Shown here: in pieces, positions 1 through 64,000 of the stretch
Position numbering within the stretch: the first letter of the stretch is position 1
Layout of the letters: every line of letters begins with the position of its first letter
Sequence record: OP991903.1
Length of the DNA: 64,000 nt
Reading direction: 5' to 3' (one strand)
Position numbers and translations under genes: made by a program
The notes under the pieces: model-generated
What the model was told of the DNA's origin: nothing
Seen by the model: only the letters and a program-made list of their open reading frames with translations
Databases searched by the model: none

Positions 1-879
1 AACGGTACCTGGAAAGGCGAAGAAGTGGCACGCCTGTGTTCCGTGTCCTTCCCCGTGATGGATGAAGAGTACACCGGCGGTAAAGCCATCTACGGTAAGA
101 ACCTGGCGCGGGTCTCTGACAAAGAAGCTTTCTTCAAGCTGATTCGCCACATCCTGCCGGGTATCGACGAAGCCGACCTGCATTACAACTACGGGTCGAA
201 TTCACCGGTGGCTCCAAACTTCCATGCGTTAATGATGGCCTACAGCCGTGTGGCGAAAGACATCAACGCGCAGCTCAAAATCTTTGAGTCCTATAACCCG
301 GCGCTGAAAGCCTGGATTATCCCGACCAACTGGACGAAAGAGATGTCAATGTTGAACGATTACCGTTTAGACATTCCATCCTCTCTGCCGGGTAACGAAG
401 GGGAAGCGGACGAAGGGACGCTGAAGGAAGAGAAGGACCGTCTGGCCAAAGAGAAAGGGCGTGAAGAACGTCGTGAACTCCGTGACCAGCACAGCCGTGG
501 CGGAAACCGTTATACGGACAATCGTGGTAGCCGTGATGAACCTCGCCGTGCCTCTTGGGGTGGCGGACGTCGTGACGAACGTGACGATGACCGTGGTGGA
601 CGTGGTGGTAACTGGGGCGGACGTGGGCGTGATGACGACCGCGATGACCGCGACAGTCGTTACAGCCGTGACCGTGGTCGCAGCCGTGATGATTACGACG
701 ACCGCCGTGGTCGTGAACGTGACCGTGACGACCGCTATAGCCGTGACCGCGAAGATGACCGCGGGCGTGGACGCGATGATGCACGTGAAACCACCTCTTC
801 CGGTATCAGCCGTGACTGGGGTGAATCAGTACGTGATGACCGCAGTCGCGACCGTGGGCGCGGCGGCTGGCGTCGTTAA
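1..879 (+). CDS. 5'-truncated conserved protein with long R/D/G-rich low-complexity C-terminal tail (positional equivalent of phiKZ gp70 in the nvRNAP block)
   Basis: Frame 1 is open from base 1 to TAA at 877-879, so the gene starts upstream of the window; last ~140 aa are RD/RG repeats; followed by a strong terminator. Identity inferred from position only. Confidence 0.7.
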   Translation, partial: NGTWKGEEVARLCSVSFPVMDEEYTGGKAIYGKNLARVSDKEAFFKLIRHILPGIDEADLHYNYGSNSPVAPNFHALMMAYSRVAKDINAQLKIFESYNPALKAWIIPTNWTKEMSMLNDYRLDIPSSLPGNEGEADEGTLKEEKDRLAKEKGREERRELRDQHSRGGNRYTDNRGSRDEPRRASWGGGRRDERDDDRGGRGGNWGGRGRDDDRDDRDSRYSRDRGRSRDDYDDRRGRERDRDDRYSRDREDDRGRGRDDARETTSSGISRDWGESVRDDRSRDRGRGGWRR

Positions 880-883
880 CAGA

Positions 884-915
884 AAAGAGGGGCTTCGGCC
901 CCTCTTTCTTTTTTC
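884..915 (+). terminator. intrinsic terminator
   Basis: AAAGAGGGGC-TTCG-GCCCCTCTTT then T-tract. Confidence 0.9.
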
Positions 916-934
916 TTTCTTAGAGGACCCGAAC

Positions 935-1153
935 ATGGCAAAAGTACCCAAACCTAACCCGCTAAGGAAATCTCTCGACGACCTGATTAAGCAGGCGGAA
1001 ATTGACGCCAAAGAAATGCACCGGTTGCGCATGGAAACGCACTTGCGTAACGGGTTGGAGAATGGCGTTCCTATAGACAGCCTCTCTGCGGTATTCAATC
1101 TTTCTGTTGAAGAGATTCAACACTTTGAACAACACGGTCAATTAGAGGAATAA
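935..1153 (+). CDS. small protein (72 aa) with C-terminal HTH-like motif
   Basis: AGAGGA RBS then ATG 935 (MAKVPKPNPL...); C-terminus GVPIDSLSAVFNLSVEEIQHF. The ORF-track start at 461 is a shadow of the upstream gene. Confidence 0.7.
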   Translation: MAKVPKPNPLRKSLDDLIKQAEIDAKEMHRLRMETHLRNGLENGVPIDSLSAVFNLSVEEIQHFEQHGQLEE

Positions 1154-1156
1154 CCC

Positions 1157-1489
1157 GTGATTACCATCGAGCTATATTTGACACGCAAGGAAGTGATGGC
1201 TCTAAAAGCAAAAGGGATGACGGACAAGGAAATTGGTCGTCAGCTGGAAGTTGTTCCCTCCCTCATTCCCCAGATACTCTCGAAAGAGGTATTTGTTGAT
1301 TTTCGTTTGAGTTCAACGTCCCCCAAGAAAGGGGATGACTTTGGTGCATTGTTGAAGTCACTGGTTCCGGAAGAACGTGACCGTCAATTACGGGAACTGG
1401 TTTACTGTCGGGTTAAGAAGATGGGGTACCATTTCAGCCAGAAACGGCTGGACCAACTTTACGATACCGCACTCCGAAATGCAGAATAA
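1157..1489 (+). CDS. HTH DNA-binding protein (LuxR/sigma region 4-like)
   Basis: EVMALKAKGMTDKEIGRQLEVVPSLIPQIL fits an HTH pattern; RBS AGAGGA, GTG start. Confidence 0.6.
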   Translation: MITIELYLTRKEVMALKAKGMTDKEIGRQLEVVPSLIPQILSKEVFVDFRLSSTSPKKGDDFGALLKSLVPEERDRQLRELVYCRVKKMGYHFSQKRLDQLYDTALRNAE

Positions 1490-1491
1490 AA

Positions 1492-1516
1492 GAAGGGCTT
1501 GCGCCCTTCCTTTTTT
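1492..1516. terminator. terminator between convergent genes
   Basis: GAAGGGC-TTGC-GCCCTTC with A-tract before and T-tract after. Confidence 0.8.
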
Positions 1517-1543
1517 ACGCCGAGACCACATGGGATGTAGTAT

Positions 1544-1891
1544 TCACCCAATTCCTTTTGCGGTTTTGAACAGCTCCATAACCCGGTCAACCACTGCCGT
1601 TTTCGGTAAGTAGATTGCCTGGTTATCCGCCCCAAATTCTTGCGGTGAGGTCATGTGGTTGGTCCGCAGAATCACGTACCAGTATTGCGGTTGTTTGATT
1701 TCGTGTACGTCTCGCAGATAACCGTAGAAATCAGCTTCGTAACGATGGCGGTCAATATCCGCTACCGTCACTAATTCGGAGTTGGTGGTATCGCGAAACA
1801 GGTACATGTGGTCTTCAATGGTCGCGTACCATGATGGGCGGTAATACCAGGCTGAGCCCGGGTTTACCATGAGGGTGTTAACTTCGGACAT
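1544..1891 (-). CDS. hypothetical protein
   Basis: 115-aa ATG ORF filling the gap, divergent from the nvRNAP gene. Confidence 0.7.
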   Translation of the reverse strand: MSEVNTLMVNPGSAWYYRPSWYATIEDHMYLFRDTTNSELVTVADIDRHRYEADFYGYLRDVHEIKQPQYWYVILRTNHMTSPQEFGADNQAIYLPKTAVVDRVMELFKTAKGIG

Positions 1892-1938
1892 AACGCCACC
1901 TGTTCAACGGATGTGTTTAACCATACGGGAATTAAAGT

Positions 1939-1948
1939 ATATATTACC
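1939..1948 (+). promoter_or_regulatory. putative phage early promoter (TATTAC core)
   Basis: ATATATTACC in AT-rich context 35 nt before the nvRNAP beta gene; identical 10-mer at 44979; TATTAC is the described phiKZ early promoter core. Confidence 0.6.
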
Positions 1949-1982
1949 GTAGTGACAGTGTTCCAATACTAAGGAATTATCA

Positions 1983-4280
1983 ATGAGTACTCTAGCCAAT
2001 GAGAATCAACTCTATACCGAACTAACGGGACTGGCGTGTAACTTACTGCCATGGATGGGCGGTGTGTCAGCCTCGCGTTTGATAATGTGGGGTAGTCAGT
2101 TACCCCAAGCGTTGGTGATTGAAGGCTGTACCCGCGACCGGTTTTACACCGGAGTTGGCCGCGAGTATGGTAAGTATACCTGGAAGACCAAAATCAAAGA
2201 CCCAATGGACATCATTGAAAAAATCGAAAAGTTCAATGTTGGGCAAGGTCTTGGCGCTTTCACAACAAACCCACGCACCACGTACATCGTGTTTAACCGT
2301 AAGAAAGAAGAATACGATATCGTGCACGTGGACAAATACGTCTCGCATCATAACAATTTCGGATATGAGCAGAAGCTGAACCTCAAAGCATTGGAACAAG
2401 CCCACCGTGGTGGGGCATTCCAGGCTGGGGCAACGCTGGCGCAATCTCCGTCAATTGATGAATACGGCATCTGGCGTCCAGGTCTTCTGACGACAACTGC
2501 CACCATGTCCCATCCGTATACTACTGAAGACGGATTTGTGGTCATGGACGAATGGTGCGAACGAGCAAAATCTCGTGGCTTCGGTACCGTGGCAATTAAC
2601 GTACCGAAAGACCACTACCTGTTGAACGTGAACGGTACGATAGACCGTCAGAAACTTATCCCAGAACCGGGTGACAGGATTCGACAAGACGGTTTGTTGT
2701 TGGCAATGCGTAAACACGACGATATCCTGGGCGGTGTGGAGTTGTCGCCAAAAGAGATGATGGAACTCGATTACTTCTTCGATGAATTCGTCTACATTGA
2801 GGCGCACACCCGCAATGCTCGTGTGATTGACGTGGAAGTCTGGAAACCGGAAAACGACCCGCTGGAACAGCAGCCGACGCCGGAAGAACAAGGGATGACG
2901 CCAACCGATGACGTAACGCGTTTCGATAACGCCCGTCGTCAGTATCACAAGCGTATCCTGGACGCCTACGATAAAATCATCCGTGACAACCGTAAGGTCA
3001 ACAAGACGCCGAAGTTCTCTAAGAAGTTCTCGCGTCTGATTCGTGACTCTGCGGGTGCCACCAGTGAGATGCCAGGGCTGGGTCGCCTGAAGCTGGTCCC
3101 TAACTACAACGGCCAGCAGCTGAACACCTGCCGTATCGTCATCAAATACACCTACGACGTCGTACCAACCATCGGGTTCAAAGCAACCGGGTGCTGGGGT
3201 GACAAAGGGGTTATTTGTAAAGTGCTGAAGCGCGAACAAATGCCGATGGACCAATACGGTGTGGTGGCTGAAGTGTTGTCTGCTCCTGTTGTCTCTATTA
3301 ACCGTATGAACCCGCCGAAAGTGTTCGAGCAGTATTACAACTTCCAGTGTATGCGCATGGAAGAACGCGTCCGTGAAATGATTAAACGTGACAGTTCTGA
3401 CGACGGCTATCGGGAAGCGTATAAACTGCTGATGTCGTTCTACGAAGTGTTGTCCAAACCGTTCTACGATAAGTTGATTGAGTTCAACGGGATGGGTAAC
3501 GACATTCGCCGCGTGAAGCGTCATGTGAACTCGGTCGTTGAAGACATGATGTACATTTACTTACCGTCCCACACTCAGAACATCGGGGTGGAAGGCGTAG
3601 GTGACATCGAAGACCGGTTCCCGTCAGATTACGGTCCGGTAACGTTTTACAACGAGAAGGGTGACCTCCGCCGTACACGCAGCAAGATTCGTATCGGTGC
3701 TAACTACATGATTGTCCTGGAGAAAACGGGTCACGACTGGTCCGCCGTCGATGCACCGCGTCGCCAGGTTCATGGGGTTCCGGCGAAGATGTCGCAGAAA
3801 GACCGCCATGCACTCCCGTGGCGTTATCAGGCAATCCGTCTGATGGGTGAGGCCGAGGTACGTAACCAGGCAGGTATTCTGGGTGGCGAGTATATGGCCG
3901 ACCAGGTAGACCGTCCGAACAACCCGAAAGCCTTGTATCAAATCTTCAGTAACATCATGAACACAGACCGCCCAACTGACATTGAGCGTGTGGTGGACCG
4001 TGAAGAGATTCCGGTCGGGAATTCCCTGGCATTGAGTTACCTGAACAACACGATGTATTGCGCAGGCGCTCAGTTTGCGTACTTCGACGTGGACCGTTTA
4101 GGGATTCCGCCTGATGTGGCTCAACCGGTGGCAGTACCAATTGACCCGGAAGAAGAAGCTGAAGAGGAAGAAGACGACATCGTTCCTGAGGATAGCGTGG
4201 TTGAAACGGAAGAAGAGTCCAGTGAAGACGACGACTCCGAAGACGACAGCGACGACGACTATTCCGATGAAGAGGAGTAA
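1983..4280 (+). CDS. non-virion RNA polymerase beta subunit, C-terminal part (phiKZ gp71-73-like)
   Basis: TIGFKATGCWGDKGVICKV matches beta GDK...GNKG with both lysines; INRMNPPKVFEQ; synteny with beta'-C and SF2 helicase; acidic C-tail. Confidence 0.9.
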   Translation: MSTLANENQLYTELTGLACNLLPWMGGVSASRLIMWGSQLPQALVIEGCTRDRFYTGVGREYGKYTWKTKIKDPMDIIEKIEKFNVGQGLGAFTTNPRTTYIVFNRKKEEYDIVHVDKYVSHHNNFGYEQKLNLKALEQAHRGGAFQAGATLAQSPSIDEYGIWRPGLLTTTATMSHPYTTEDGFVVMDEWCERAKSRGFGTVAINVPKDHYLLNVNGTIDRQKLIPEPGDRIRQDGLLLAMRKHDDILGGVELSPKEMMELDYFFDEFVYIEAHTRNARVIDVEVWKPENDPLEQQPTPEEQGMTPTDDVTRFDNARRQYHKRILDAYDKIIRDNRKVNKTPKFSKKFSRLIRDSAGATSEMPGLGRLKLVPNYNGQQLNTCRIVIKYTYDVVPTIGFKATGCWGDKGVICKVLKREQMPMDQYGVVAEVLSAPVVSINRMNPPKVFEQYYNFQCMRMEERVREMIKRDSSDDGYREAYKLLMSFYEVLSKPFYDKLIEFNGMGNDIRRVKRHVNSVVEDMMYIYLPSHTQNIGVEGVGDIEDRFPSDYGPVTFYNEKGDLRRTRSKIRIGANYMIVLEKTGHDWSAVDAPRRQVHGVPAKMSQKDRHALPWRYQAIRLMGEAEVRNQAGILGGEYMADQVDRPNNPKALYQIFSNIMNTDRPTDIERVVDREEIPVGNSLALSYLNNTMYCAGAQFAYFDVDRLGIPPDVAQPVAVPIDPEEEAEEEEDDIVPEDSVVETEEESSEDDDSEDDSDDDYSDEEE

Positions 4281-4282
4281 GA

Positions 4283-6271
4283 ATGCGCACTTTCTACGCC
4301 GATGATATTCTGCATTGGAGTGAGCGACAAATATGGGCACGGCTCGATGACCTCGAGCCAATCGCCCTAATCTTTGCCGACGGGGAAATCATTGCCGACT
4401 TCCCACAAACCTTAATCAGTTGGTATTTCTGGGAGTATCATCGTCAGTACCCGTCGATACCGCTCTGCATTAAGAACCACGTCTACGGTGAACCGTTGAG
4501 TAAAGGTCTGGAGAACAAGCTGCACCAACGTGCTGCTGAACAGGTCTATGCGGAGTATCCGCTGGAAGACCGCCAGAACGTTTACAAAATCAACGCCGGG
4601 ATAACGCAGGCGCTGCACAATGCGATTGCAACCGATGGCGAAGAGTTCCAAACCACACTCGACGCCCTCGACTTTCTGGAGATTCACCGTCATCCACAAT
4701 TGAAGGAGATTCGTGAACGGCCGATAACCGGGAAACGTGATATCTCGAACGGCTATAAAGAGTTCGTGTATATCCTGTCCCATGACCCGAGCCTGAACCA
4801 CAATAACCTGGCCATTCCACACCGTAACTCGATGACCAAAACCGGTCAGCTGTTACAGGTGGTCGACAAGGTGGGCTTCCGTAGCGAGATTAACCAGCGT
4901 ATCTTCGTTAACCCGATTCCGGTTGGGTTCTCGGAACACCTGAAACGACTGTCCTTCTCCGCAATGGACCGTTGCTCTGCTGCACAAGCCCAGTTAGCCA
5001 CGAGTGAACCGGTTAAACGTACTGAGTACTATAACCGCGAACTTCAGCTGATAACCTACGTCGTCCACGGTGTTGACCAGCAGGACTGTGGGTCGAAAGA
5101 AACCATCCCGTGGAAAGTCACGAAGGATGACCTGGAACACGTCTTACCGGGCAAGTATTACTTTGACCGGGACGGCGATTTGAAGATGGTGCGCGGTAAA
5201 GGTTACGATAACCACTTGGTGGGTACCGTGATTCGAATGCGTACCCCGTCGAAGTGCCAGCATCCAGAAGACGGTGTGGTGTGTAAGTATTGTCTTTGTG
5301 AGAATGCGTCGCGGGTACAGGACGACACCAACCCTGGTTTCGCCCTGACGGTTACCCAGAACGAAGCCGTATCACAGGACGTTATTTCCACCAAACACCA
5401 CCTGGTCTCTGCGGAGTCGGAATCTTACGTGATTCATGACCACGAACTGAAGTATATCTCCAACCTCGGTGACGATAAGGAGATAACGCTTTCCAGGGAC
5501 CTTTGGGGCAAGCACGTTAAAGTCCGTTTCGATGTGAGTGACATTTTCCGTCTGGCAGATATCTCCATCTTTAACGAACTGAAAGACGGTGACTTGTCCC
5601 GTATCTCCACGATTAAGGAAATTGTTCTCGTTATTGATAACGGGGATAAGAACCAGAAAATGGACATCGTCCCTGTCAGCCGTGGCTCCTACCGCCCATT
5701 CCTGACCAAAGAGTTCCTCCAATATATGCGCGACTTTGGTTTCCAAACCGTCGGCAAATATATTGAGGTTGACCTGATGAACTGGGACAACGCAGAAATC
5801 ATCCTGCGCTTCCCGGAACGCCGTGGCTCAACCCTGGAGCAAATGGAAGAGTTGAAATCAGTCATCTTCATGTCGTCGGATATCGGTAAAGAATTACTAC
5901 GCCGAGACCTGACTGACCCTGTGAACTTGGCCGGTGCAATTCGACTGGTGTGTGACATGACCAACCGTAAGTTCTCGGTCAACTTGGGTATTGTGGAACT
6001 GGTGTTGTACTGCATGATGGGTCGTGACCCGAAAAACGGAGACTTCCGTCTGCCGAAGCTCGGGACCGGGATTCACTTTGCACCACAAACCCGCATCATG
6101 AGCGGTCGTAGTTTGTCTGCGAAAGCGGCGTACGAACGACAGTTCGAGATGATAGCTGACCCGAAATCTTACATTCACCGCATTCGTCCTAACCATTCAT
6201 TTGACCCACTGTTCTTGAACATCAAGAAGTGGAATCAGTACTGGCAGACGAAAGGGGTGAAAGTGGTCTAG
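4283..6271 (+). CDS. non-virion RNA polymerase beta' subunit, C-terminal part (phiKZ gp74-like)
   Basis: Bridge-helix-like region then DCGSKE, MRTPSKC, CKYC zinc ligands and trigger-loop-like VSQDVISTKHH. Confidence 0.88.
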   Translation: MRTFYADDILHWSERQIWARLDDLEPIALIFADGEIIADFPQTLISWYFWEYHRQYPSIPLCIKNHVYGEPLSKGLENKLHQRAAEQVYAEYPLEDRQNVYKINAGITQALHNAIATDGEEFQTTLDALDFLEIHRHPQLKEIRERPITGKRDISNGYKEFVYILSHDPSLNHNNLAIPHRNSMTKTGQLLQVVDKVGFRSEINQRIFVNPIPVGFSEHLKRLSFSAMDRCSAAQAQLATSEPVKRTEYYNRELQLITYVVHGVDQQDCGSKETIPWKVTKDDLEHVLPGKYYFDRDGDLKMVRGKGYDNHLVGTVIRMRTPSKCQHPEDGVVCKYCLCENASRVQDDTNPGFALTVTQNEAVSQDVISTKHHLVSAESESYVIHDHELKYISNLGDDKEITLSRDLWGKHVKVRFDVSDIFRLADISIFNELKDGDLSRISTIKEIVLVIDNGDKNQKMDIVPVSRGSYRPFLTKEFLQYMRDFGFQTVGKYIEVDLMNWDNAEIILRFPERRGSTLEQMEELKSVIFMSSDIGKELLRRDLTDPVNLAGAIRLVCDMTNRKFSVNLGIVELVLYCMMGRDPKNGDFRLPKLGTGIHFAPQTRIMSGRSLSAKAAYERQFEMIADPKSYIHRIRPNHSFDPLFLNIKKWNQYWQTKGVKVV

Positions 6272-6280
6272 GGAGACTAA

Positions 6281-7801
6281 ATGGTTGAGGGCGTACTGGA
6301 GTTCTACAGCCACTTCTATACGGTCAATCCCGTGGGTCCCAGGATGCGTGTGGCATTGCGCGAATGGCTCACGGGGTTGATTGAAAAGAAGCTGACGAAG
6401 AAACGCGGTAAGTTCTACATGGAACCGCACTGTGTGTACGCGGCTAAGTCGCCAAAGCACGGGCGGTACCACCTCCACCGTAACGAATGGGAGTTGTTTC
6501 ACGACCATCTCAAGAAGCACGGGATTCAGGACACCTCGCTGGACTTTCGCTACCATGAACCGGTAGCCGGAGCCCGCGTGGAACTGGACATGGGGGAATG
6601 GGTGCCCTGGGATAACCAGGTGCCCGTTATTGACTTCGCGTTTCGTGGGGACCGACAAACCTGTATCACCACTCAGCCAGGCGGCGGTAAGACACTGATG
6701 TTTCTCTTTATCGCCGCTCGTTTCGGTCAGCGCTTTGCCGTGCAGACCAAAGGCGGTTACGAAGGACGATGGCTGGAGGCGTTTTATAAACACCTCTCGC
6801 TTACGCCCGACGAGATTCGCAGCTGCTGTGGTGCGGCACGGTTGTACCAATTGATTCGGGAGAAAAAGAAGAAGGGGTTAGACGGCGTCAAAGCCATCTT
6901 TATCTCTAACGGGGCGATTCGTACCTACATCAACAACTACGAGTCCGGCGCAGATGCTGGAACCGGGGCTGAGGATGTCCCACCTTGGGAGCTCTACGAG
7001 TTTCTGGGGATTGGGTTACGCGGTACCGATGAAACCCACCAGGAGTATCACGCGAACTACATCGCTGACTTGTACACTCACATGCCAATGACCGTGTACC
7101 TAACCGGTACATTGTTCCCACGCGATGAGTTCATCAAGCGCGTGTACGAAACCATGCTCCCGCACCGTATCCGTAAGGAAGCAGCGGAACTGCGTGTTTA
7201 CGCAGACATGGTGGAAGTGTTCTATAACGTGAAAGACCCTCGGCTGTTTGAGAACTTCAACAAACAGTCGGTGTACTCGCACAACGAGTACGAGAAGGTT
7301 ATCATGCGTCACCCGGAGATGATGCAACGGTATCTGGACGCCGTCTACAACTACGCACTGGACAAGTGGGTACTGGAGAAGGAAGAAGGGACCAAGTTAC
7401 TTATCTTCACCGGGCTGGTCGAAATGGGCCAACACCTTCTGGAGTACTTCCGTAGAAAGCTACCGGACTTAATCATTAACTCGTTTAATGCCGGTGACGA
7501 CTATACGGTCCTGGAAGAATCGGACATCATCTTCTCAACGGTCATCAAGGCCGGTACAGCGGTTGATATCCCAGACCTGACGCAGGTGCACAACACCGTG
7601 TCGTCAGACTCCCCGAACCAAAACGTACAGTGCCTCGGTCGTCTACGTGAGCTACCGAAGCGACCCAACGTTCAAGTTGAATACCACGCGTACATCTGTG
7701 AGGATATTCCCAAACAGGTCACGTACGGTAAACGACGACAGACGTTGTTTAAAAGTCGCATCAAGCGAACGCGTCAGGCGCGGCTGGGACGTTTAATCTA
7801 G
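6281..7801 (+). CDS. superfamily 2 (DExH) helicase (phiKZ gp75-like)
   Basis: Walker A QPGGGKT, Walker B DETH, motif III LTGT, motif V GTAVDIPDL, motif VI QCLGRLR. Confidence 0.9.
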   Translation: MVEGVLEFYSHFYTVNPVGPRMRVALREWLTGLIEKKLTKKRGKFYMEPHCVYAAKSPKHGRYHLHRNEWELFHDHLKKHGIQDTSLDFRYHEPVAGARVELDMGEWVPWDNQVPVIDFAFRGDRQTCITTQPGGGKTLMFLFIAARFGQRFAVQTKGGYEGRWLEAFYKHLSLTPDEIRSCCGAARLYQLIREKKKKGLDGVKAIFISNGAIRTYINNYESGADAGTGAEDVPPWELYEFLGIGLRGTDETHQEYHANYIADLYTHMPMTVYLTGTLFPRDEFIKRVYETMLPHRIRKEAAELRVYADMVEVFYNVKDPRLFENFNKQSVYSHNEYEKVIMRHPEMMQRYLDAVYNYALDKWVLEKEEGTKLLIFTGLVEMGQHLLEYFRRKLPDLIINSFNAGDDYTVLEESDIIFSTVIKAGTAVDIPDLTQVHNTVSSDSPNQNVQCLGRLRELPKRPNVQVEYHAYICEDIPKQVTYGKRRQTLFKSRIKRTRQARLGRLI

Positions 7802-10771: not shown

Positions 10772-11248
10772 TTATTTATTTCCTTCTAACTTACGCAACT
10801 CATCAGCCAGTTGCGCCGCAGCAGCGTCTTGCTTGTTTTCCGCAGCAGACGCTTTGATGGCATCCCGGATTAACATCTGAGCCGTGTCATTTGGTAACAG
10901 AAGGAACTCGGAGTAGTTATACCCGTACAGGTCCTTCATGCGGTAGACACGGAACTTTTCCACTAACGCCTCGTACATGCCTCGGTTAGCCGCCATCTCC
11001 GTCTTATGCATCTCCATGGGAGCGTACGGATGTTTGGCGGCGTATTCCGGGGTGTAGATGCGGTGGTCCAGGTCGTATGCCCGTCGCAGCGCTAACTTGG
11101 CCTGAAACTCCGTTAAGCTACCGGCAGACTCGAGGACGCCATAGACGCGTTCGCCGAGACCTGTTGTACAAAATTCCGGATGCCTAACGTCGAAAGGTCG
11201 GTCAGCGGCTGAATCCCCGCGTGAACCATCTTGCGTTGCGCAAGGGTA
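10772..11248 (-). CDS. -1 frameshift C-terminal extension of the assembly-chaperone gene (gpGT-like)
   Basis: Frame is open from 11290 to TAA 10772 with no ATG/GTG/TTG between the slippery site and ATG 11017; C-terminus YGYNYSEFLLLP resembles gpT/GpE-like chaperone tails. Confidence 0.75.
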   Translation of the reverse strand, partial: YPCATQDGSRGDSAADRPFDVRHPEFCTTGLGERVYGVLESAGSLTEFQAKLALRRAYDLDHRIYTPEYAAKHPYAPMEMHKTEMAANRGMYEALVEKFRVYRMKDLYGYNYSEFLLLPNDTAQMLIRDAIKASAAENKQDAAAAQLADELRKLEGNK

Positions 11249-12936
11249 AAAAAACCCAGTGCAGCATTGAACGGCAGAATCAGTCGTGCTTCACCTCCAC
11301 GGTTCAGGTGGAGTTTACCACACGCCGAGCACGGCACGTTGATGGAGGCGATGAGGGAAACCATGCTGTTCTGGATATAGTTATCCACCGCACGCAACAG
11401 TTCGTTCACGGTAGCCGGTTCTGCGGACAGCAGTTTCAGGATATCGCGAATCTCATCTTCCCCGTCGATGGTGTCAGGGGAGTCTTCATCTTCCGGGTTC
11501 GGGATTTCGATGTTACGGATGTAGTGACCGTAACGACAGAGTTGCTCTGAACTAATCAGGCTGTTGATTAGCGCAGCACGCTTCTGGTCATTCCCTTCCA
11601 GGTCTTCGCCCATGGCTTCAACCAGCGCACGGTTCACGGAGTTAATCCATTGACGACCGTTTGCGAAGTATTCCGCCAGCGTAGAAACGAAGAAGTTGAA
11701 GCGACGACTCTTGTACTCGAAGTACTCGTTCTCGTGCGTCAGGAAGTCAGCCTGGTATTTCTCCAGGTCTTCATCCGTTACACGACCCGTACCAGCGCGG
11801 TCCATGTGGGTACGTTGTGCCGTGGTGAGACGACCTTCATCCACCCAGGACATACGTAGCAGAGAAGCAAAGACGCGGTCAGTGTGACGACATTCACCGT
11901 CAGTACACGGAATCGCAATGTCTGTACCGTCCGGCCACGCCGCCACAGCCATCCCCCAGATTAACTGGTCTTTGTCGTGGGCACTGATGACTTCTTTCAG
12001 TTCCAGCGGCGAAGAGGCAATCGGGTAACTGGTAGACGTTACCAGACGCAGTGCAGCATCAACCAGGATTTCTTCGAACAGCAACGCTTCGTTGGAGTTC
12101 AACATCCCAGACGTGTCCATGCCGAGCTCAGGACGGGCAAACGCCAGTGCACGGTCAATCTCGGCCAGGTAACCGATAGACGGCGTACGCATGGTCACCC
12201 AGATACCGGTGCGCCACAGAGGAACCTGAACCGGGTGACCGATACCTGTACCGGTAACGAACGCTTCGGTTGCACGACTACCCACCAACGCCTGACCGTT
12301 CTTCTGACCTTCAGGACGTTTGAACAGGGTCTTACGCAGACGGAGTTCGCGCCCTTTCTTCCCGGTGGCGATTTCGTTCACCCAGTGCGCTTGGTCACGC
12401 ACCACAGCTTCAGTCAGGCCTTTACCGGAGAGAGACGAGTCGATAGCATCACGCATGGCCAGGAACCAGTTGTAATCATCCAGACCCGCCATGTCCCCCA
12501 TGCTCTCACCGCGGAGGTAGTAATCCTCCAGGGTGGTGCGCAGCAGAGACAAGTTCGCCGAGAAGTTGGCCTTATTCGACGCATCCTTTAATGGCGAACG
12601 AGAAAGGTCAACTTTCCCTTCCACTTTGTCGTCATCAAAGAAGAACCCTACTTCGCTCACTTCCTGGGCCTGTTCTACCGGGGCGTCATCGTCAGCCTCG
12701 GTGCTGTCGTTCGGTAGGTCAGTGGCAGTTACCGCTGCTTCCGCCGTCGCCTCAGGAACGGGTTGAATATCAGTAGCAGGGTCAACTTGCTGGGGAGCAG
12801 GTTCGGCAACCACCGGAGCAATCTCCGGCTGCTGACTGACGACTTCGACAACCGCATCATCGTCTTGAAATGCGGTATCGGGTAACGGACGCAGACCCGC
12901 CGGGAGTGGCGGGGTATCTTCAGGCAGGTTGGACAT
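11113..12936 (-). CDS. putative tail/baseplate-hub assembly chaperone (T4 gp26 / gpG-like; phiKZ gp77-like)
   Basis: 607 aa; P/A/D/E-rich disordered N-terminus, CxxxxC (CTDGEC) and CxxC (CSAC) motifs; carries the frameshift signal. Confidence 0.6.
   Translation of the reverse strand: MSNLPEDTPPLPAGLRPLPDTAFQDDDAVVEVVSQQPEIAPVVAEPAPQQVDPATDIQPVPEATAEAAVTATDLPNDSTEADDDAPVEQAQEVSEVGFFFDDDKVEGKVDLSRSPLKDASNKANFSANLSLLRTTLEDYYLRGESMGDMAGLDDYNWFLAMRDAIDSSLSGKGLTEAVVRDQAHWVNEIATGKKGRELRLRKTLFKRPEGQKNGQALVGSRATEAFVTGTGIGHPVQVPLWRTGIWVTMRTPSIGYLAEIDRALAFARPELGMDTSGMLNSNEALLFEEILVDAALRLVTSTSYPIASSPLELKEVISAHDKDQLIWGMAVAAWPDGTDIAIPCTDGECRHTDRVFASLLRMSWVDEGRLTTAQRTHMDRAGTGRVTDEDLEKYQADFLTHENEYFEYKSRRFNFFVSTLAEYFANGRQWINSVNRALVEAMGEDLEGNDQKRAALINSLISSEQLCRYGHYIRNIEIPNPEDEDSPDTIDGEDEIRDILKLLSAEPATVNELLRAVDNYIQNSMVSLIASINVPCSACGKLHLNRGGEARLILPFNAALGFFTLAQRKMVHAGIQPLTDLSTLGIRNFVQQVSANASMASSSLPVA
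11230..11257 (-). promoter_or_regulatory. -1 programmed ribosomal frameshift signal
   Basis: Minus strand CTG GGT TTT TTT ACC CTTGCG-CAA-CGCAAG: in-frame XXXYYYZ heptamer, 6-nt spacer, 6-bp hairpin. Confidence 0.75.
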
Positions 12937-13547: not shown

Positions 13548-14390
13548 ATGATTGACGACTATCTCGATTATATTTTCCGGGCACTCGGTCCGGAACAGGC
13601 GACCCTATATAAAGACGCCGCTAAGTTGATTCGTGAGATTGACCCCGTTACCACGGATATGTTACTCAATACATTAGCGTCAACGGTAGAAAATAATACT
13701 ACCGCGGACAACGTGAACGGGTTCTACAGCTGGTTGGTTAACAACCTGTGTGAACGTATCGAAGAGTTCGGAGTGTACCTGAATGATGACTTTGAATACT
13801 ACGGAGCCTTACCACTGCTGTATGCCATCTGCGATGCATTGTACAAACTCGAGCATCACGATAACCTGGAAGAGTTTCGCACCATTCTTAACGATGCCAT
13901 GGGACCTAAGCTCGCTATGGGCGAAATCGTCAACTCCATCTCATCCGACGTTGCCACAGAGAGCTTTTGTGAACTGGTGCAGGAAGTCTCCACGTCACTC
14001 ATTAAGCGAATCCGAGAACTTGTCGCCGACCGACGAGACTACCTGATGGAAGAAGACAGTACCGATGACCCGGCACACCGTGCCCGTGTGAAAGCCGGTA
14101 TGGCACTGTACGAAACCACCGGGATGGTCCGGTACTTCCAGCACGGCGGACAACTGGGGTTGACGTTTGACCATTACGTCGATTACTTCTACCGTGAAAT
14201 CACCACCCTGGATGCGCAGAAAGCCGCCAAGATGTTGAAGACCATCGGGTTATTTGCCAACCTGACCGGGGAAGCCTTTGAGACCAAAGCCGGGGAAACC
14301 CTGAACGTTATATTTGGCGACCCGAACAAAGCCATTCAGGTAGGTCGTGCGCTGCGGGCCTTACCGGAAGTAGGGGATAACCATGAATAA
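13548..14390 (+). CDS. conserved protein upstream of vRNAP beta'-C (phiKZ gp79-like)
   Basis: 280-aa ORF with GGGAG RBS, coupled to the next gene; TATG at 13513-13516 upstream. Confidence 0.7.
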   Translation: MIDDYLDYIFRALGPEQATLYKDAAKLIREIDPVTTDMLLNTLASTVENNTTADNVNGFYSWLVNNLCERIEEFGVYLNDDFEYYGALPLLYAICDALYKLEHHDNLEEFRTILNDAMGPKLAMGEIVNSISSDVATESFCELVQEVSTSLIKRIRELVADRRDYLMEEDSTDDPAHRARVKAGMALYETTGMVRYFQHGGQLGLTFDHYVDYFYREITTLDAQKAAKMLKTIGLFANLTGEAFETKAGETLNVIFGDPNKAIQVGRALRALPEVGDNHE

Positions 14391-15783
14391 GTTGGAATAC
14401 TTCCTGCGCGCCCTTAACGGGGGTGCGTACCTTTACAAGGAATGGATTATCGAGTGTTTCGGGATTGTGCGTCTGCTACCGAAGCCGGAAGGGGAGCTGG
14501 TTCGTTACAGTGCCTTACCGGTGGAAGAGAAGGAGATGCTCCCTTACCGCTTCACCGATGAACCCGACCGCTATGCGTTCGAGAAGTACCCGTACCAGCT
14601 CTTTAACGATAACGGGAAGGTTGTGTACGCTGACCCGGAAGAGAACGTCTGGGTAGAGCTGGAAGAGCTTACACCACGGATGCAGAAGCGTGAGAGTTTC
14701 TTCCGCTTCCTGGAACACATCTTCTTACCGAAGCGCGCCATCCCGAACGTTCTGGAACCGATAAAGCATACCTGTTACGGTAACCTCTTGCTGAACATGG
14801 TGGTCCTGGTGTATTCGTTCGGTGACCGTATCCCGTATCAGGAAGGGAAGTTCAGCCTGAAAAAGGTTGAGATGATTATCGCGGAGCTGACCCAATCCTT
14901 ACCGGAAGAAGGGAAGCCTCGTGACCCGAAAGCCATTTACGTGGACGAACTGGATGAGCGCTATTACCATGCGGCCTATTCCACCACGGGCTGGCTCCCG
15001 CTAGGCGTTCCGGCCGCAACCCCGTTCACCATCACCGTGTCCCCTGAGATTCGTAAGCTGCGTAAAGAGTTGCTCGAGAAATACATCGACGACTTACAAA
15101 ACCCGGCGACCATTGCGAAAATCATGAAGACGTTGATTGACGCGGACAAAGAGTTCCAGGCGAACGACCCCGACAAAGGGTTCTTGCAACCGGGTAAGAC
15201 CTTTGACGTCGTGCGTGCCAAGCAGTTCCTGATGCACGGTATCGAGTACGACTTCACAGACCGCTCTAAAATCACCGTCATTGAACGCTCGCTTTCTGAG
15301 CAGTGGGATATCACCAAACTCCCACAGATGGCTAACAGCCTGATTGACGGCTCGTACAACCGTGGTGCCATGACCGCCCTCGGTGGTGAACTGGCAAAAG
15401 TGTTCCAGCGCTTCTTCATGTCAACCGTTATCTCCATGGAAGACTGTAAGACCAAACTGGGACGCTTCCGTACACTGGACAACGACAACATCCAGTCGTA
15501 TCACGGCACGTACGCTCAGGGTCCGTCGAAAGACGTGCTCATTACCGTGGACAACGAGAAAGAGTTCATCGGTAAACGTGTGTTGTTGCGTAGCCCAATG
15601 TACTGTGCGGCGACTGAAGGTAACTTCTGCATCCACTGCATGGGCGAGAACTTCCGTAACCGTGAACAATCTCTCCCTGCGGTTGCCACGGAAATCGGTA
15701 ACCGTCTGATGTACATCATGATGTCACGTATGCACGGTGTGGCACTGAAGGTCGAGAAGATGGACTGGAAAGCCATGCGCTGA
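14383..15783 (+). CDS. virion RNA polymerase beta' subunit, C-terminal part (phiKZ gp80-like)
   Basis: GSYNRGAMTALGG bridge-helix-like, EDCKT, LRSPMYC, CIHCMG zinc ligands, MMSRMHG trigger-loop-like. Confidence 0.85.
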   Translation: MNKLEYFLRALNGGAYLYKEWIIECFGIVRLLPKPEGELVRYSALPVEEKEMLPYRFTDEPDRYAFEKYPYQLFNDNGKVVYADPEENVWVELEELTPRMQKRESFFRFLEHIFLPKRAIPNVLEPIKHTCYGNLLLNMVVLVYSFGDRIPYQEGKFSLKKVEMIIAELTQSLPEEGKPRDPKAIYVDELDERYYHAAYSTTGWLPLGVPAATPFTITVSPEIRKLRKELLEKYIDDLQNPATIAKIMKTLIDADKEFQANDPDKGFLQPGKTFDVVRAKQFLMHGIEYDFTDRSKITVIERSLSEQWDITKLPQMANSLIDGSYNRGAMTALGGELAKVFQRFFMSTVISMEDCKTKLGRFRTLDNDNIQSYHGTYAQGPSKDVLITVDNEKEFIGKRVLLRSPMYCAATEGNFCIHCMGENFRNREQSLPAVATEIGNRLMYIMMSRMHGVALKVEKMDWKAMR

Positions 15784-17073: not shown

Positions 17074-18831
17074 TTAGTATTCCAGTGTGATACCCCGAGC
17101 TTTAGCAAAGCGATGCAGCATGGTTTCCTGGCTCGGCGCGTTGCAGATAGTTGTCATAATGTTTACGGCGTTTACAGCCCCTGCCGGTAAGTTAATACCA
17201 AGGCGACGTTGCTCTTCCATCGTAATCCCCAGGATTTTGCACATCTGACGGATGATAGTCTGCTGTTCCAGGTTCATCCACACACCGGTGGACGGGTAGG
17301 AAGACTTCACGTCAATGTCCAGCACCCATTTGATAACCTTGGTCAGGATATCCGGGAATTCCTTGATGACCTTGTTACCCATCCCGCGGTCAATGAGGTG
17401 AGAAGACAGGGTACAAATCCAACCTTCAAGTGTAACCAGCAAGTCGTCCATTTCATTCTGCATCTGGTCAGAGATACCGCAGATAACGGTGTTCTCTCTT
17501 TCCAGTAGTTTGAAGTACTGGTCGTCATACAACTTCTTACCCTGCGAACCGTAGTTGGACATGTCTGACCAACCGCACTGCGCGGGGAAGGTGTTACGTA
17601 AGTCCAGGGTATACTCATCCAACAACTGTGCACCGATGTTATCGAACATGTTGTAGACGCAGTAGAAGACCTTTTCGTTACGTTGCATTTGACGGTGCCA
17701 GTCGATACCGGTTGAACGGTTCTTACCGGCGTCACCTTTGAGCTTACCGAAACCGAACACACGCATCAGCACGGCACCCAACCCGTAACCACCTTCTTTC
17801 GGCAAGTGCTTACGGATAGCACGGCGGACACACATCTGGTCTGCCCAGAAGAAGTGGGACGGACAGTTTACACGGTGCCAACGGTCTTGCGGTTCTTTGT
17901 TAGCCCCTTCGCCGTTCGCATCGAGGATACGTGCGGACCCTTCCTGGAAACGGAAGTAACGGTATTCTTTTGGAATCTTCGGGTCACAGAACACATCCTC
18001 AGGTTCGATGTTCTCACGCTTAAGCGCAATGCACATCTTCTCTAAGTCGTACGGTAAGTTCCAGATGGACAGGATATCCGGTTTCTTCTCGTGCAGATAG
18101 TCGAACGCCAGGATAACCGCTTCCGCTTCTGTCTTCGCCGTCTTCAGGATAATGTTGAACGGTTCGTGGACTTTCCCTTTAAAGAACTTCGGTTTCCCGT
18201 CTTCGTCACGGGCGGCAGCCAGTTCTTCGAAGATAGGTGGGATTTCAGCATCGTAACACTTGCGTACCTTGTCCAGGAATTCGGTGTCACCCGCCATGTA
18301 GTGTTCAGTAATAACCTGGAACACTTCGTTGCCACACGAGATGGAAATCATCTGAATCGCTTCGGTACCGAAGGTCACGTCACGTTCGATATCGAGGTGT
18401 GCGGTCAGATAGTCCGATTTGTACTCGCCCCACTTACGGTCATATTCCCGTTTGATAATGGTGGTGGAGTTGATGTCCGTACCGTACAGATAGGGACTGC
18501 GGTTCAATTGCTTAATACTGGAAGGTCTGCCGTACCCTAACGCTTTAACGATGGCCAGTGGCATCTCGCGTTCGGTACAGCGGTATTCGCGCAGCTTGTC
18601 TTTGTCTTCCCAACTCCGTTTCTCTTTGTGGGTCCGGAACTTATCACGGGTGACGTAGAAGGTGCGCTCGAAGTTTTTAATCATTCGAATTTTCGGGATA
18701 CGCACACCGTTGTCCCAGTGTTCGATTTCTTTTACGAAGATGGCCTCATCGTGGTCATTGAATTTGGAATTCACCTTCGTGGCGTGCTTAAACTCACGCC
18801 CTAATAATTTAGGTTTCGCTACTTCGGTCAT
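17074..18831 (-). CDS. split family-B DNA polymerase subunit (exonuclease + motif A; phiKZ gp82-like)
   Basis: ExoI HLDIE, ExoII SIWNLPYD, ExoIII YNMFD, polymerase motif A DIDVKSSYPS near C-terminus; motifs B and C not seen. Confidence 0.85.
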   Translation of the reverse strand: MTEVAKPKLLGREFKHATKVNSKFNDHDEAIFVKEIEHWDNGVRIPKIRMIKNFERTFYVTRDKFRTHKEKRSWEDKDKLREYRCTEREMPLAIVKALGYGRPSSIKQLNRSPYLYGTDINSTTIIKREYDRKWGEYKSDYLTAHLDIERDVTFGTEAIQMISISCGNEVFQVITEHYMAGDTEFLDKVRKCYDAEIPPIFEELAAARDEDGKPKFFKGKVHEPFNIILKTAKTEAEAVILAFDYLHEKKPDILSIWNLPYDLEKMCIALKRENIEPEDVFCDPKIPKEYRYFRFQEGSARILDANGEGANKEPQDRWHRVNCPSHFFWADQMCVRRAIRKHLPKEGGYGLGAVLMRVFGFGKLKGDAGKNRSTGIDWHRQMQRNEKVFYCVYNMFDNIGAQLLDEYTLDLRNTFPAQCGWSDMSNYGSQGKKLYDDQYFKLLERENTVICGISDQMQNEMDDLLVTLEGWICTLSSHLIDRGMGNKVIKEFPDILTKVIKWVLDIDVKSSYPSTGVWMNLEQQTIIRQMCKILGITMEEQRRLGINLPAGAVNAVNIMTTICNAPSQETMLHRFAKARGITLEY

Positions 18832-31315: not shown

Positions 31316-31353
31316 TCCTATAGCGCTCATGCGTTCGAGGATTCTGGTTAAAT

Positions 31354-42397: not shown

Positions 42398-42471
42398 TAC
42401 TAGCGCCTATTATGGTATGTGATAATATCACTCGTCAAGTACTTGACACCAAAACCTTTCAACGTTGAAGG
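42390..42471 (+). promoter_or_regulatory. late-promoter region of MCP with clustered palindromes
   Basis: TATG at 42411 and 42416; perfect palindromes at 42390-42407, 42434-42447, 42458-42469. Confidence 0.45.
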
Positions 42472-42481
42472 AAAGAGAAGA

Positions 42482-57253: not shown

Positions 57254-57285
57254 CCGGTGGGAGAGCATCCCACCGGTTTCTTATG
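57254..57285 (+). terminator. hairpin followed by TTTCTTATG
   Basis: CCGGTGGGA-GAGCA-TCCCACCGG; TATG at 57282-57285 may be a late promoter. Confidence 0.7.
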
Positions 57286-57322
57286 TGTCTACCCTTTAAT
57301 AAGCAACCCGGAGAATACTCTG

Positions 57323-58252: not shown

Positions 58253-58264
58253 TAAGGGGGCGTG

Positions 58265-59211: not shown

Positions 59212-59216
59212 AAAGA

Positions 59217-59247
59217 CGGGGGCACAGTCCCCCGCTTTTATTTTTTG
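59217..59247 (+). terminator. intrinsic terminator
   Basis: CGGGGG-CACAGT-CCCCCG + T-tract. Confidence 0.75.
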
Positions 59248-59262
59248 TTCAGGAGGTTGCCC

Positions 59263-59823: not shown

Positions 59824-59826
59824 CCC

Positions 59827-61078: not shown

Positions 61079-61086
61079 CGCTAACA

Positions 61087-61129
61087 ATGGCGGCGTTACC
61101 TTCGGGTAGCGCTGTCATTCTTTTATGCT
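61087..61129 (+). terminator. terminator hairpin + TTTTATGC
   Basis: AATGGCGGCGTTACC-TTCG-GGTAGCGCTGTCATT (15 bp with GU). Confidence 0.8.
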
Positions 61130-61140
61130 TCGAGGTACGT

Positions 61141-61920: not shown

Positions 61921-61929
61921 GGGGGAGGT

Positions 61930-62700
61930 ATGATTGAAGCGCTCTTGATGGGAAGAAGGAAACCGTCCGCAGCGTGGGCATTGGGCACTGAGATGTTGGC
62001 GTGGGACTCGAGTATCTTCAGGGACACTGGTTTTGTCGATTACACCGGAAAAACTTTGAAGGTCACCAGTGTTATCCCAACCGCCGGTGCAGCAGTCCCC
62101 CCACTATTACCTTCATTGGGTGCCGAAAGTTTTCAATACGGAAAGGGTGTGGAAATGGGACATGGTTCTGTCGCCACTCCACCCGGGACTATTACACCAG
62201 GATTTGTGACCAGTGCCTGGACGGTGGATTATTGGAAACGGGACTTGGACGTCCTTTCCCCGGTTAACAAACACCAACCGTTAGTCCCCCTGATTGTTTA
62301 TCCCGACCTCACGGTAAACGGCTACTGGACCAACCGGTTACAGTGTACCTTGGGGTACGCCAACACCGCCCGCTTGGTTGGGATTTGGAACAATCAGGCT
62401 GCGCCCAGAATCAACGGAATGAAACAGAACGATGCATTCTACGGCACCGACTGGAAACACATTGCAGTCATGTACTCTGGCGGCAAGGTTTACTTCTTCT
62501 GTAACGGGGTGTTGATTGACACGCTGACGTACACGATTCTGACTCCTACGGGTAACCAACAGGTTGGTATCATGTCGCAGTCTGTGGCGAACAGTCCCGA
62601 TGTCAGGGGGATGGTAGAACGTTACCGACTGCGTGCCGGGGCACTGTTCCCGACCACCGGGTTCACTGCGGACACGGCAACCCTTTACCCCAGCGCGTAA
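61930..62700 (+). CDS. LamG/concanavalin-like tail-associated protein
   Basis: MIEALLMGRRK; WTVDYW, WKHIAVMYSGGKVYFFCNGVL, GMVERYRL. Confidence 0.65.
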   Translation: MIEALLMGRRKPSAAWALGTEMLAWDSSIFRDTGFVDYTGKTLKVTSVIPTAGAAVPPLLPSLGAESFQYGKGVEMGHGSVATPPGTITPGFVTSAWTVDYWKRDLDVLSPVNKHQPLVPLIVYPDLTVNGYWTNRLQCTLGYANTARLVGIWNNQAAPRINGMKQNDAFYGTDWKHIAVMYSGGKVYFFCNGVLIDTLTYTILTPTGNQQVGIMSQSVANSPDVRGMVERYRLRAGALFPTTGFTADTATLYPSA

Positions 62701-62713
62701 CGAGGATGAAACC

Positions 62714-63463
62714 ATGCAAGAACTTTTGTTAGCTGGGAAGAAAAGCGGTAAATACCCCGGGGCGACCACACCCATTGGACGATACGTCGACCCCAACAAC
62801 AGTGCGCGTTTTACGGAGTTCTACGGAGAGGTGGCGAACAGCGCTATGCCCTCAGTAGCCGCATTGCGAGCACTCGGGGGTAATGTGGGGTCGGCTATCA
62901 ACGCAACCATCCCGTGGTTGAAATTCGGGATTGACGGTCGCCTCCTCTATACACCGAAGAAACCTATCACCTCTGCTTACGGGTGGAGTGCACTTTACTC
63001 TTCGGGTTTAGTCTGGGGGTCAAACGACAACGGGCTGTTCAACAACGGAACACCGCGTAACCAGTTACGGACCATCGTCTTGAACGGGGTCACGTATAAG
63101 GTCATGTTGTGGAACGTCCTGCAACCCGGTCTGGGTAAGCTCCCTTATAACGGGAACTACGCCAACCGAACGGAGATGCTGGGGTCGGATTGGATGCGAT
63201 TGATTCCCAACATCGTTTCCACTACTGTCTCTGCGCAGGAAGGCCCGAAGTGGGAAACATATGACCCGGTAAACGACCTGATGCTGATTGGTGGTACCAC
63301 TACACCCGGTGGATTACAGTTGTGTCGCGAGCAGGTCAATGCCAACGACAGCCTGGCCCGTGCCGCGACCGTCTGGAGTAGCATCTGGACAGTGGGTGCG
63401 CCTGTTATCACTGACGTTCAGGCCTATTTAGGTTGGCGTCCTGTTTTGGAAATCATTCCTTAA
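62714..63463 (+). CDS. phiKZ gp131-family virion/tail protein
   Basis: Start MQELLLAGKKSGK; FYGEV, WLKFGIDGRLLYTPKKP, SDWMRL, GWRPVLE motifs of the gp131-like paralog family. Confidence 0.7.
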   Translation: MQELLLAGKKSGKYPGATTPIGRYVDPNNSARFTEFYGEVANSAMPSVAALRALGGNVGSAINATIPWLKFGIDGRLLYTPKKPITSAYGWSALYSSGLVWGSNDNGLFNNGTPRNQLRTIVLNGVTYKVMLWNVLQPGLGKLPYNGNYANRTEMLGSDWMRLIPNIVSTTVSAQEGPKWETYDPVNDLMLIGGTTTPGGLQLCREQVNANDSLARAATVWSSIWTVGAPVITDVQAYLGWRPVLEIIP

Positions 63464-63473
63464 GGGGTAGACC

Positions 63474-64000
63474 ATGTTAGAAGCCATACTCCTCGGTAAG
63501 AAGAACGGATTTGTTCCGGGTGAGCAGCCCTATATCGGTTATAATTTCGAGAAAGGACTATCGACCGGCAAACAGGTTATCAGTCTCACTAACCTGATTG
63601 CTAGTGATGTGGTCACACCACCGGTAGCCCTTTCGGGGTACAGTAAAGCACTGTTCACGGGAACCAAACAGTTCCCCATCATCCCGTTGACGTCAATGGA
63701 TGTAGGGACCGGGGATTTCACGATTGAATTTCCTTTCTATTGTACCCAGACCAGTAATGGTTATACGACTTTGATGTACCAACGCCCGAATACATCCAGT
63801 TGGGGCGGATTAATCATTCGCTTTGGGGATAACGGGTACGGTAACCGCTTACAGGTTTCGACCCAACCTGATATAGGTAACTCGAACTACTCAACCAGTA
63901 CAACGCGAGCAACCGGGACCAATCGCTGGATACATTTCGTCATGCAGCGACGTAACGGGAAAATCTCCGTCTACCTGAATGGGGTGAAACAAGGATTGGC
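63474..64000 (+). CDS. LamG/concanavalin-like tail-associated protein (3'-truncated)
   Basis: GGGG RBS, MLEAILLGKKNG; GTGDFTIEF, WIHFVMQRRNGKISVYLNGV; no stop before the window end, so absent from the ORF track. Confidence 0.7.
   Translation, partial: MLEAILLGKKNGFVPGEQPYIGYNFEKGLSTGKQVISLTNLIASDVVTPPVALSGYSKALFTGTKQFPIIPLTSMDVGTGDFTIEFPFYCTQTSNGYTTLMYQRPNTSSWGGLIIRFGDNGYGNRLQVSTQPDIGNSNYSTSTTRATGTNRWIHFVMQRRNGKISVYLNGVKQGL

Follow-up and report, generated by a model that had tools for sequence, protein, structure and literature searches.

The palindromic tetranucleotide GATC is absent from the 64,000-nucleotide window analyzed here, which corresponds to positions 124001-188000 of OP991903.1, the genome of Erwinia phage vB_Ea277G (genus Iapetusvirus, family Chimalliviridae). 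An exact search of the window returns no copies, where 248 are expected from base composition (close to the 250 or so given in a first-pass annotation that had noticed the gap by eye) and 274 from a second-order Markov model. All 100 dinucleotide-preserving shuffles of the window contain GATC, with a mean of 231.6 copies and a standard deviation of 13.6. The trinucleotide GAT occurs 939 times in the window without once being followed by C, and ATC occurs 871 times without once being preceded by G. The absence is stronger than the annotation had claimed, since it extends to the whole circular record of 218,506 bp (0 versus a Markov expectation of 859). We put about even weight on the reading that it represents restriction-site avoidance imposed by the hosts of the phage on DNA that is never methylated. 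Loss of this kind belongs to the known phenomena of restriction-site and Dam-site avoidance, and what sets this case apart is its occurrence in a phage family that is supposed to be shielded from such enzymes.

Protein-coding constraints do not account for the missing sites. We permuted synonymous codons within each of the 248 called open reading frames (ORFs), which make up 94% of the genome, 200 times, so that all protein sequences and the codon usage of every gene were preserved. These shuffles predict 806 ± 21 GATC sites (z = -38.7), and the next most depleted palindromic tetramer, AATT (z = -15.8), still has 440 copies. The 13.3 kb of intergenic DNA also contains no GATC, with 29-51 expected. 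Avoidance is visible directly in codon context. The preference for the isoleucine codon ATT after G-ending codons, which had been pointed out within the window, holds genome-wide, with ATC used in 0 of 872 such positions and in 67% of positions elsewhere. Likewise, none of the 879 aspartates that precede a C-initial codon is encoded by GAT, which encodes 43% of those elsewhere, and serine following an NGA codon is encoded by AGY in every case. GATC could be lost without any amino acid change because no dipeptide forces it. Other sites that were listed by eye as present, CCWGG (249 copies), GAATTC (19), AAGCTT (11) and GTCGAC (17), are all found in the window.

Five palindromic hexamers have also been purged. 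Each has no copies in the vB_Ea277G genome or in that of its independently sequenced sister isolate PhiEaH1 (218,339 bp), and the codon shuffles predict the following whole-genome counts (z = -5 to -11):

CTGCAG, 84 expected, 0 observed
GCCGGC, 55 expected, 0 observed
ATCGAT, 50 expected, 0 observed
GGCGCC, 46 expected, 0 observed
GCATGC, 31 expected, 0 observed

Among hexamers that do not contain GATC and have at least 15 expected copies, these five are the only ones with a count of zero, and all of them are palindromes. When every hexamer with a Markov expectation of at least 4 copies is considered, 5 of 56 palindromic words are missing and 0 of 3,940 non-palindromic words are. This confinement of hexamer loss to palindromes is the textbook mark of Type II restriction-site avoidance.

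Purifying selection against GATC and the five hexamers is current. A megablast search with window positions 20000-40000 matches vB_Ea277G at 100% identity and PhiEaH1 at 99.2%, and the two genomes differ by 2,804 substitutions, 2,060 of which are synonymous. GATC is absent from the entire PhiEaH1 genome as well, and no gain of the site separates the isolates, where 73.5 are expected once the kind of base change and the class of substitution (synonymous, non-synonymous or intergenic) are controlled for (P about 1e-32). Random placement of the same kinds of substitutions predicts 55 new GATC sites (range 36-83). The five hexamers were not gained either (25.8 expected in total). Control palindromic tetramers did turn over during the same divergence, by 13-77 sites in each direction. 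That GATC is missing by chance, through mutation bias or as a sequencing artefact therefore has a negligible probability. The deficit against the codon shuffles (0 versus 806 ± 21) and against the expected gains (0 versus 73.5) rejects these explanations, and artefact is further rejected by the concordance of two independent isolates, PhiEaH1 from Hungary and vB_Ea277G from Mexico, with a metagenome contig. A 22-kb stretch of a 215-kb IMG/VR contig that encodes an identical capsid protein has no GATC.

Similar losses occur in conventional phages of Erwinia amylovora, which replicate their DNA in the open cytoplasm. The first 50 kb of Y2, S6 and phiEa104 and 45.5 kb of phiEa1H give these counts:

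Y2 (Chaseviridae), GATC 1 versus 175 Markov-expected, 3 of 47 hexamer palindromes absent
S6 (Schitoviridae), GATC 0 versus 171 Markov-expected, 17 of 46 hexamer palindromes absent
phiEa104 (Ounavirinae), GATC 0 versus 215 Markov-expected, 17 of 36 hexamer palindromes absent
phiEa1H (Autographiviridae), GATC 54 versus 178 Markov-expected, 9 of 44 hexamer palindromes absent

GATC loss is therefore a convergent trait of phages that share this host ecology and is not peculiar to this jumbo phage. Most of the four also lack CTGCAG, GGCGCC, GCCGGC and GCATGC. Phages phiEa104, S6 and Y2 share with vB_Ea277G both the virtual absence of GATC and the loss of hexamer palindromes. They differ in the extent of the second effect, because S6 and phiEa104, but not Y2, lack far more hexamers than vB_Ea277G (5 of 56) or any other chimallivirus that we sampled, which would fit partial shielding of chimallivirus DNA. 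In phiEa1H and phiEa104, and also in the chimallivirus Stratton, these four hexamers are all missing or nearly so, as they are missing from vB_Ea277G. The FelixO1-like coliphage vB_EcoM_VpaE1, another conventional phage, reportedly lacks MboI (GATC) sites altogether and has lost many hexamer sites, which it shares with vB_Ea277G as a pattern.

The first-pass annotation had proposed that either a host factor that reads GATC reaches the phage DNA at some stage or the phage encodes its own GATC-directed nuclease and spares itself by having no sites. The first proposal fits the convergence among E. amylovora phages, the five lost Type II palindromes with no non-palindromic counterpart, and the continuing selection. 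The second, in which a phage-made endonuclease destroys host DNA and the site-free phage genome survives, fares poorly, and we consider it highly improbable. A majority of the roughly 249 genes are of unknown function, leaving room for a novel nuclease. However, Pfam detected no methyltransferase domain and no nuclease domain (MutH/Sau3AI, DpnII or other PD-(D/E)XK, HNH or GIY-YIG types included) in 70 uncharacterized non-structural proteins of at least 180 amino acids, a negative of little weight since the majority of them have no match at all. What did appear were lectin-like and glycine-rich structural domains, domains of unknown function and noise below the threshold. A tblastn search of the phage genome with E. 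coli MutH also gives no match (best E = 4.3), and the PHROG-style RefSeq annotation of PhiEaH1 includes SbcC, SbcD, RNase H, helicases and polymerases and no restriction-type nuclease, HNH enzyme or methyltransferase. Six purged sites would need six such enzymes, and GATC has been lost from four unrelated E. amylovora phages (near-totally in three and partially in phiEa1H), which argues against a private phage enzyme. Furthermore, a nuclease blocked by Dam methylation would spare the host DNA, and one that depends on methylation would not need the phage to lose its sites.

The description of vB_Ea277G as a nucleus-forming phage is borne out by its gene content. Its chimallin gene (OP991903.1 112216-114186, outside the window) matches phrog_4795 'nuclear shell protein' over its full length (E = 3e-164), and the corresponding PhiEaH1 RefSeq product, gp022, is annotated as nuclear shell protein. 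The genome also encodes a PhuZ tubulin (phrog_4733, E = 6e-100), several split RNA polymerase beta-type subunits are annotated in PhiEaH1, and the NCBI taxonomy assigns Iapetusvirus to Chimalliviridae. Judged by these genes, vB_Ea277G can be classed as nucleus-forming; no microscopy of PhiEaH1 or vB_Ea277G was found in the literature searched. Reviews report that host proteins are excluded from the chimallivirus compartment, that replication takes place within it, and that nucleus-forming phages withstand restriction enzymes completely and hardly need to disguise their DNA. The expectation that such a shell should make site avoidance unnecessary agrees with these reviews, but it is contradicted by the genomes, since most of the enterobacterial chimalliviruses sampled are depleted of GATC, lack whole hexamer palindromes, or both. 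The literature searched does not mention site avoidance in chimalliviruses.

GATC depletion within the family is common but patchy, and the Iapetusvirus lineage is the extreme case. We sampled 18-42 kb around the capsid gene of each relative, together with two uncultured contigs of 3.8 and 20 kb, and expressed GATC content as the ratio of observed to Markov-expected copies (a range is given where two calculations differed slightly):

uncultured relative with 68% capsid identity, host unknown, 0.05 (4 of 85 expected)
uncultured relative with 66% capsid identity, host unknown, 0 of 15 expected
Phobos, Erwinia, 0.16
Wellington, Erwinia, 0.27
Stratton, Erwinia, 0.32
Machina, Erwinia, 0.37
SPFM2, Salmonella, 0.43
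Eowyn, Klebsiella, 0.44
Goslar, E. coli, 0.72-0.73
SA002, Salmonella, 0.85
phiKZ, Pseudomonas, 0.86
PCH45, Serratia, 0.87
2050HW, Serratia, 0.92
Ea35-70, Erwinia, 0.96-0.97
FBKp24, Klebsiella, 0.98-0.99

The comparison across relatives that had been suggested thus gives ratios of 0.16-0.99 for the sampled isolates, and none of these isolates reaches the zero GATC of the vB_Ea277G/PhiEaH1 lineage. Judging by the two uncultured relatives, GATC loss appears to be conserved in the clade to which this lineage belongs. The depth of the trait rests on these two small contigs because the capsid scans returned only four loci in IMG/VR and two in a metagenome collection. The other chimalliviruses (Stratton, Phobos, Machina, Wellington, SPFM2, PCH45, Goslar, Ea35-70 and phiKZ) resemble vB_Ea277G in having chimallin, PhuZ and split RNA polymerases, and many of them also resemble it in partial GATC depletion or loss of whole hexamers.

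Hexamer palindromes are absent from the samples of Stratton (7 of 46), SPFM2 (4 of 51), Machina (4 of 36) and PCH45 (3 of 48), and none is absent from those of Ea35-70, FBKp24 or Eowyn. The 42-kb PCH45 sample (MN334766.1 11988-54261) is without CTGCAG, GCCGGC, GGTACC and CCCGGG while its GATC content is near normal, and therefore hexamer purging and GATC purging are separable within the family. The phiKZ sample has 0 CTGCAG sites versus 7 expected, which fits the missing PstI sites that the phiKZ genome paper reportedly noted. Ea35-70 infects the same host as vB_Ea277G and shows no avoidance whatever (GATC 169 versus 175 expected in 22.7 kb, KF806589.1 248391-271084), and Agricanvirus and Iapetusvirus may thus truly differ in how far their DNA is exposed or protected.

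Host-imposed restriction-site avoidance could produce this pattern in the following way. Phage DNA would carry no protective methylation, given that no phage methyltransferase was found, and if the shell excludes host enzymes, then host Dam and the methylases of restriction-modification systems probably never mark the progeny. Host endonucleases would cut the DNA at some point when the shield is missing or leaks, and the most plausible time for this is injection or the brief interval between injection and the sealing of the compartment. Each GATC, CTGCAG, ATCGAT, GGCGCC, GCCGGC or GCATGC would then carry a fitness cost, and because all six can be removed by synonymous codons, they would be purged by selection and new ones continually removed. 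Site loss would in fact be the only heritable escape from restriction if the shell bars methylases in the same way as nucleases. As the factor that reads GATC, we favor a restriction enzyme that circulates in Erwinia and Pantoea and belongs to the MboI/DpnII/Sau3AI class. A Dam-positive host can tolerate a methylation-sensitive enzyme of the MboI/DpnII type even if it has no dedicated methylase. MutH is the second choice.

Type II restriction-site avoidance in phage genomes was reportedly described by Sharp in 1986. Rusinov et al. 2018 (PMC6286503) documented wide avoidance of Type II sites by phages and treated GATC as a special case. vB_Ea277G conforms to the general pattern in that short palindromes have been eliminated completely without a matching loss of non-palindromic words, synonymous codon choice is the route, unrelated phages of one host share the effect, and related phages purge differing sets of hexamers. 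It differs in belonging to Chimalliviridae, which are reviewed as fully restriction-resistant.

Enterobacterales have Dam and MutH, and a cut by the mismatch repair system is a second way in which GATC could become costly. MutH activated by MutS and MutL would cut unmethylated GATC on both strands of the under-methylated phage DNA, or would disturb replication or packaging, at a small additive cost per site. Restriction would then have to account separately for the loss of the five hexamers. In all the depleted Erwinia phages sampled, whatever their family, no other tetramer comes close to GATC in its degree of depletion, and the graded depletion of Phobos, Wellington, Stratton, Machina, SPFM2 and Eowyn fits a small cost per site. 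With 12,676 tetramers in the genome that are one substitution away from GATC, new sites are rare and weak selection could hold the count at zero. GATC loss in enterobacterial phages has been known since 1984, according to Pereira-Gomez and Sanjuan 2015 (PMC5014478), who cite McClelland 1984, Deschavanne and Radman 1991, and phiX174 experiments in which GATC was restored. The Dam-site counter-selection described for T7 and phiX174 resembles the present case in that GATC is the most depleted tetramer of a virulent enterobacterial phage in which no phage Dam methylase was found. It differs in scale, with 0 of about 806-859 sites in 218 kb of vB_Ea277G and only about 20 expected in phiX174, and in that vB_Ea277G presumably replicates out of reach of MutHLS.

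We nevertheless regard dependence on mismatch repair as unlikely, though well worth keeping in view, and prefer a restriction enzyme as the reader of GATC. Three points lead us to this view. From the loss of the hexamers it is evident that enzymes of the restriction type act on the phage. MutH needs mismatches, and these arise during replication and recombination, reportedly inside a shell that excludes host proteins. Finally, five chimallivirus lineages on comparable, Dam- and MutH-positive enterobacterial hosts keep near-normal GATC (PCH45, in which hexamers have been lost, 2050HW, FBKp24, Ea35-70 and SA002), and host Dam and MutH alone are therefore insufficient. A scan of a genome collection with E. 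coli MutH found 519 relatives, and the best 80 of these 519 are all from Enterobacteriaceae, with none from Erwinia.

GATC could also be costly without being cut if Dam methylation or SeqA binding disturbs transcription, the initiation of replication or packaging. GATC is the site of both proteins, the hosts are enterobacteria, and no GATC nuclease was identified on the phage or the host side, where no search was aimed at restriction enzymes. This explanation is rather improbable, because it provides no reason for the concurrent loss of five unrelated hexamer palindromes, host proteins are reportedly kept out of the compartment, and Ea35-70, 2050HW, FBKp24 and PCH45 tolerate GATC at normal density. 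Selection might instead act on RNA, with a host GAUC-specific ribonuclease or RNA sensor attacking the mRNAs that chimalliviruses export. A palindromic GATC gives GAUC in the transcript of either strand, so that strand asymmetry cannot separate DNA from RNA as the target, and RNA is a known weak point of nucleus-forming phages, which are vulnerable to type III CRISPR and Cas13. The five hexamers lost together with GATC are classical DNA restriction sites, however, and conventional phages of the same host are depleted as well. We know of no GAUC-specific defence ribonuclease and find this possibility barely credible.

Several observations weigh against host-imposed restriction-site avoidance. 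The sites of the E. amylovora enzymes Eam1104I (CTCTTC) and Eam1105I (GACN5GTC) are not avoided, with observed/expected ratios of about 1.25 each. No GATC-cutting restriction enzyme was identified in Erwinia or Pantoea, where no sequence search for that class was made, and the literature searched contained nothing relevant on Erwinia restriction systems or methylomes. E. amylovora was the isolation host both of phiEa1H, with its 54 GATC sites, and of Ea35-70, in which the density of GATC is as expected, and laboratory strains therefore probably have no strong GATC restriction enzyme. The classical literature, as cited in PMC5014478, credits Dam and MutH and not restriction for GATC loss in enterobacterial phages. 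Reviews also describe the resistance of nucleus-forming phages to restriction in the laboratory as complete. Lastly, graded depletion (ratios of 0.16-0.44) needs weak additive costs per site, which a restriction enzyme would impose only if its access is brief.

A very small cost per site may reconcile the genomic signature with complete resistance in the laboratory. At a mutation rate typical of DNA phages (Drake's rule), we estimate that new GATC sites arise in roughly 1e-5 to 1e-4 of replications. Since they originate so rarely, a cost too small to be seen by plating could hold the count at zero. It is possible, though we would put it at rather less than even, that Iapetusvirus DNA can be reached by cytoplasmic nucleases at some stage and that of Agricanvirus (Ea35-70) cannot, and that site avoidance records how leaky the shield is in nature. 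If so, then chimallivirus genera would differ in how they protect the genome early in infection.

The genomes of vB_Ea277G and several related genera bear a clear and still-active mark of restriction-type selection that conflicts with the notion of complete resistance. If the cost per site is indeed that small, site avoidance would reveal exposure that plating efficiency misses and would be the more sensitive measure of the two. PhiEaH1, which has no sites, and Ea35-70, which has a normal density of them, form a ready pair on the same host for questions about the timing and quality of protection of the injected genome. A commercial phage product against fire blight includes PhiEaH1, and its site-free genome may help explain its usefulness across strains.

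The window contains the following genes, with positions counted from its first nucleotide:

1983-4280 and 4283-6271, + strand, two adjacent RNA polymerase beta-type subunit genes with the length and order of PhiEaH1 gp008 and gp007 ('RNA polymerase beta subunit')
6281-7801, + strand, DNA helicase gene, equivalent of PhiEaH1 gp006
11113-12936, - strand, conserved 607-amino-acid protein of unknown function (phrog_4585, E = 4e-99; no Pfam domain)
13548-14390 and 14383-15783, + strand, two further RNA polymerase beta-type subunit genes, equivalents of PhiEaH1 gp240 and gp239
17074-18831, - strand, DNA polymerase gene, equivalent of PhiEaH1 gp236
40205-41773, - strand, DnaB-like replicative helicase gene, equivalent of PhiEaH1 gp217
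42419-44782, + strand, major head protein gene (PhiEaH1 gp215), the query for finding relatives; its tblastn matches are annotated 'major head protein' (219 phage records)
59827-60576, + strand, thymidylate kinase gene, equivalent of PhiEaH1 gp201 tmk

The split multisubunit RNA polymerases at 1983-6271 are typical of Chimalliviridae. The 607-amino-acid ORF has no annotation in PhiEaH1 because the linear PhiEaH1 record starts and ends within this gene. Together with thyA and dut, which lie elsewhere in the genome, tmk points to DNA with ordinary thymine and no obvious base modification. No tRNA or tmRNA genes were found in the window, nor any Rfam families at the gathering threshold.

Two ORFs mirror each other almost exactly on opposite strands, at 29939-31315 (+, 458 amino acids) and 29948-31330 (-, 460 amino acids). 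Both are annotated in the PhiEaH1 RefSeq record, as gp226 'internal head protein' and gp225 'hypothetical', and only the + strand ORF is annotated in vB_Ea277G. The antisense ORF is probably spurious. PhiEaH1 also encodes a tail sheath protein (gp075), and Chimalliviridae are myoviruses; a 2024 review classes this phage as a siphovirus.

Other words deviate from expectation less completely than GATC. CTAG is depleted in the window (16 versus 54 Markov-expected) and in the genome (73 versus 208), which is the usual shortage of enterobacteria and their phages and is far from total. Measured against the codon shuffles of the whole genome, TATG/CATA occurs 521 times where 897 are expected (z = -16.9). 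Its density peaks in intergenic DNA (3.8 per kb), with 1.1-1.6 per kb in the sense orientation of coding sequence and about 0.7 in the antisense orientation. TATG is part of the phiKZ late-promoter motif, and its depletion may therefore reflect avoidance of spurious promoters. Runs of A or T are scarce on the same measure (AAAA/TTTT, 1,398 versus 2,170, z = -21.8), and GAAGA and GCATC are enriched 1.33-fold and 1.37-fold, respectively.

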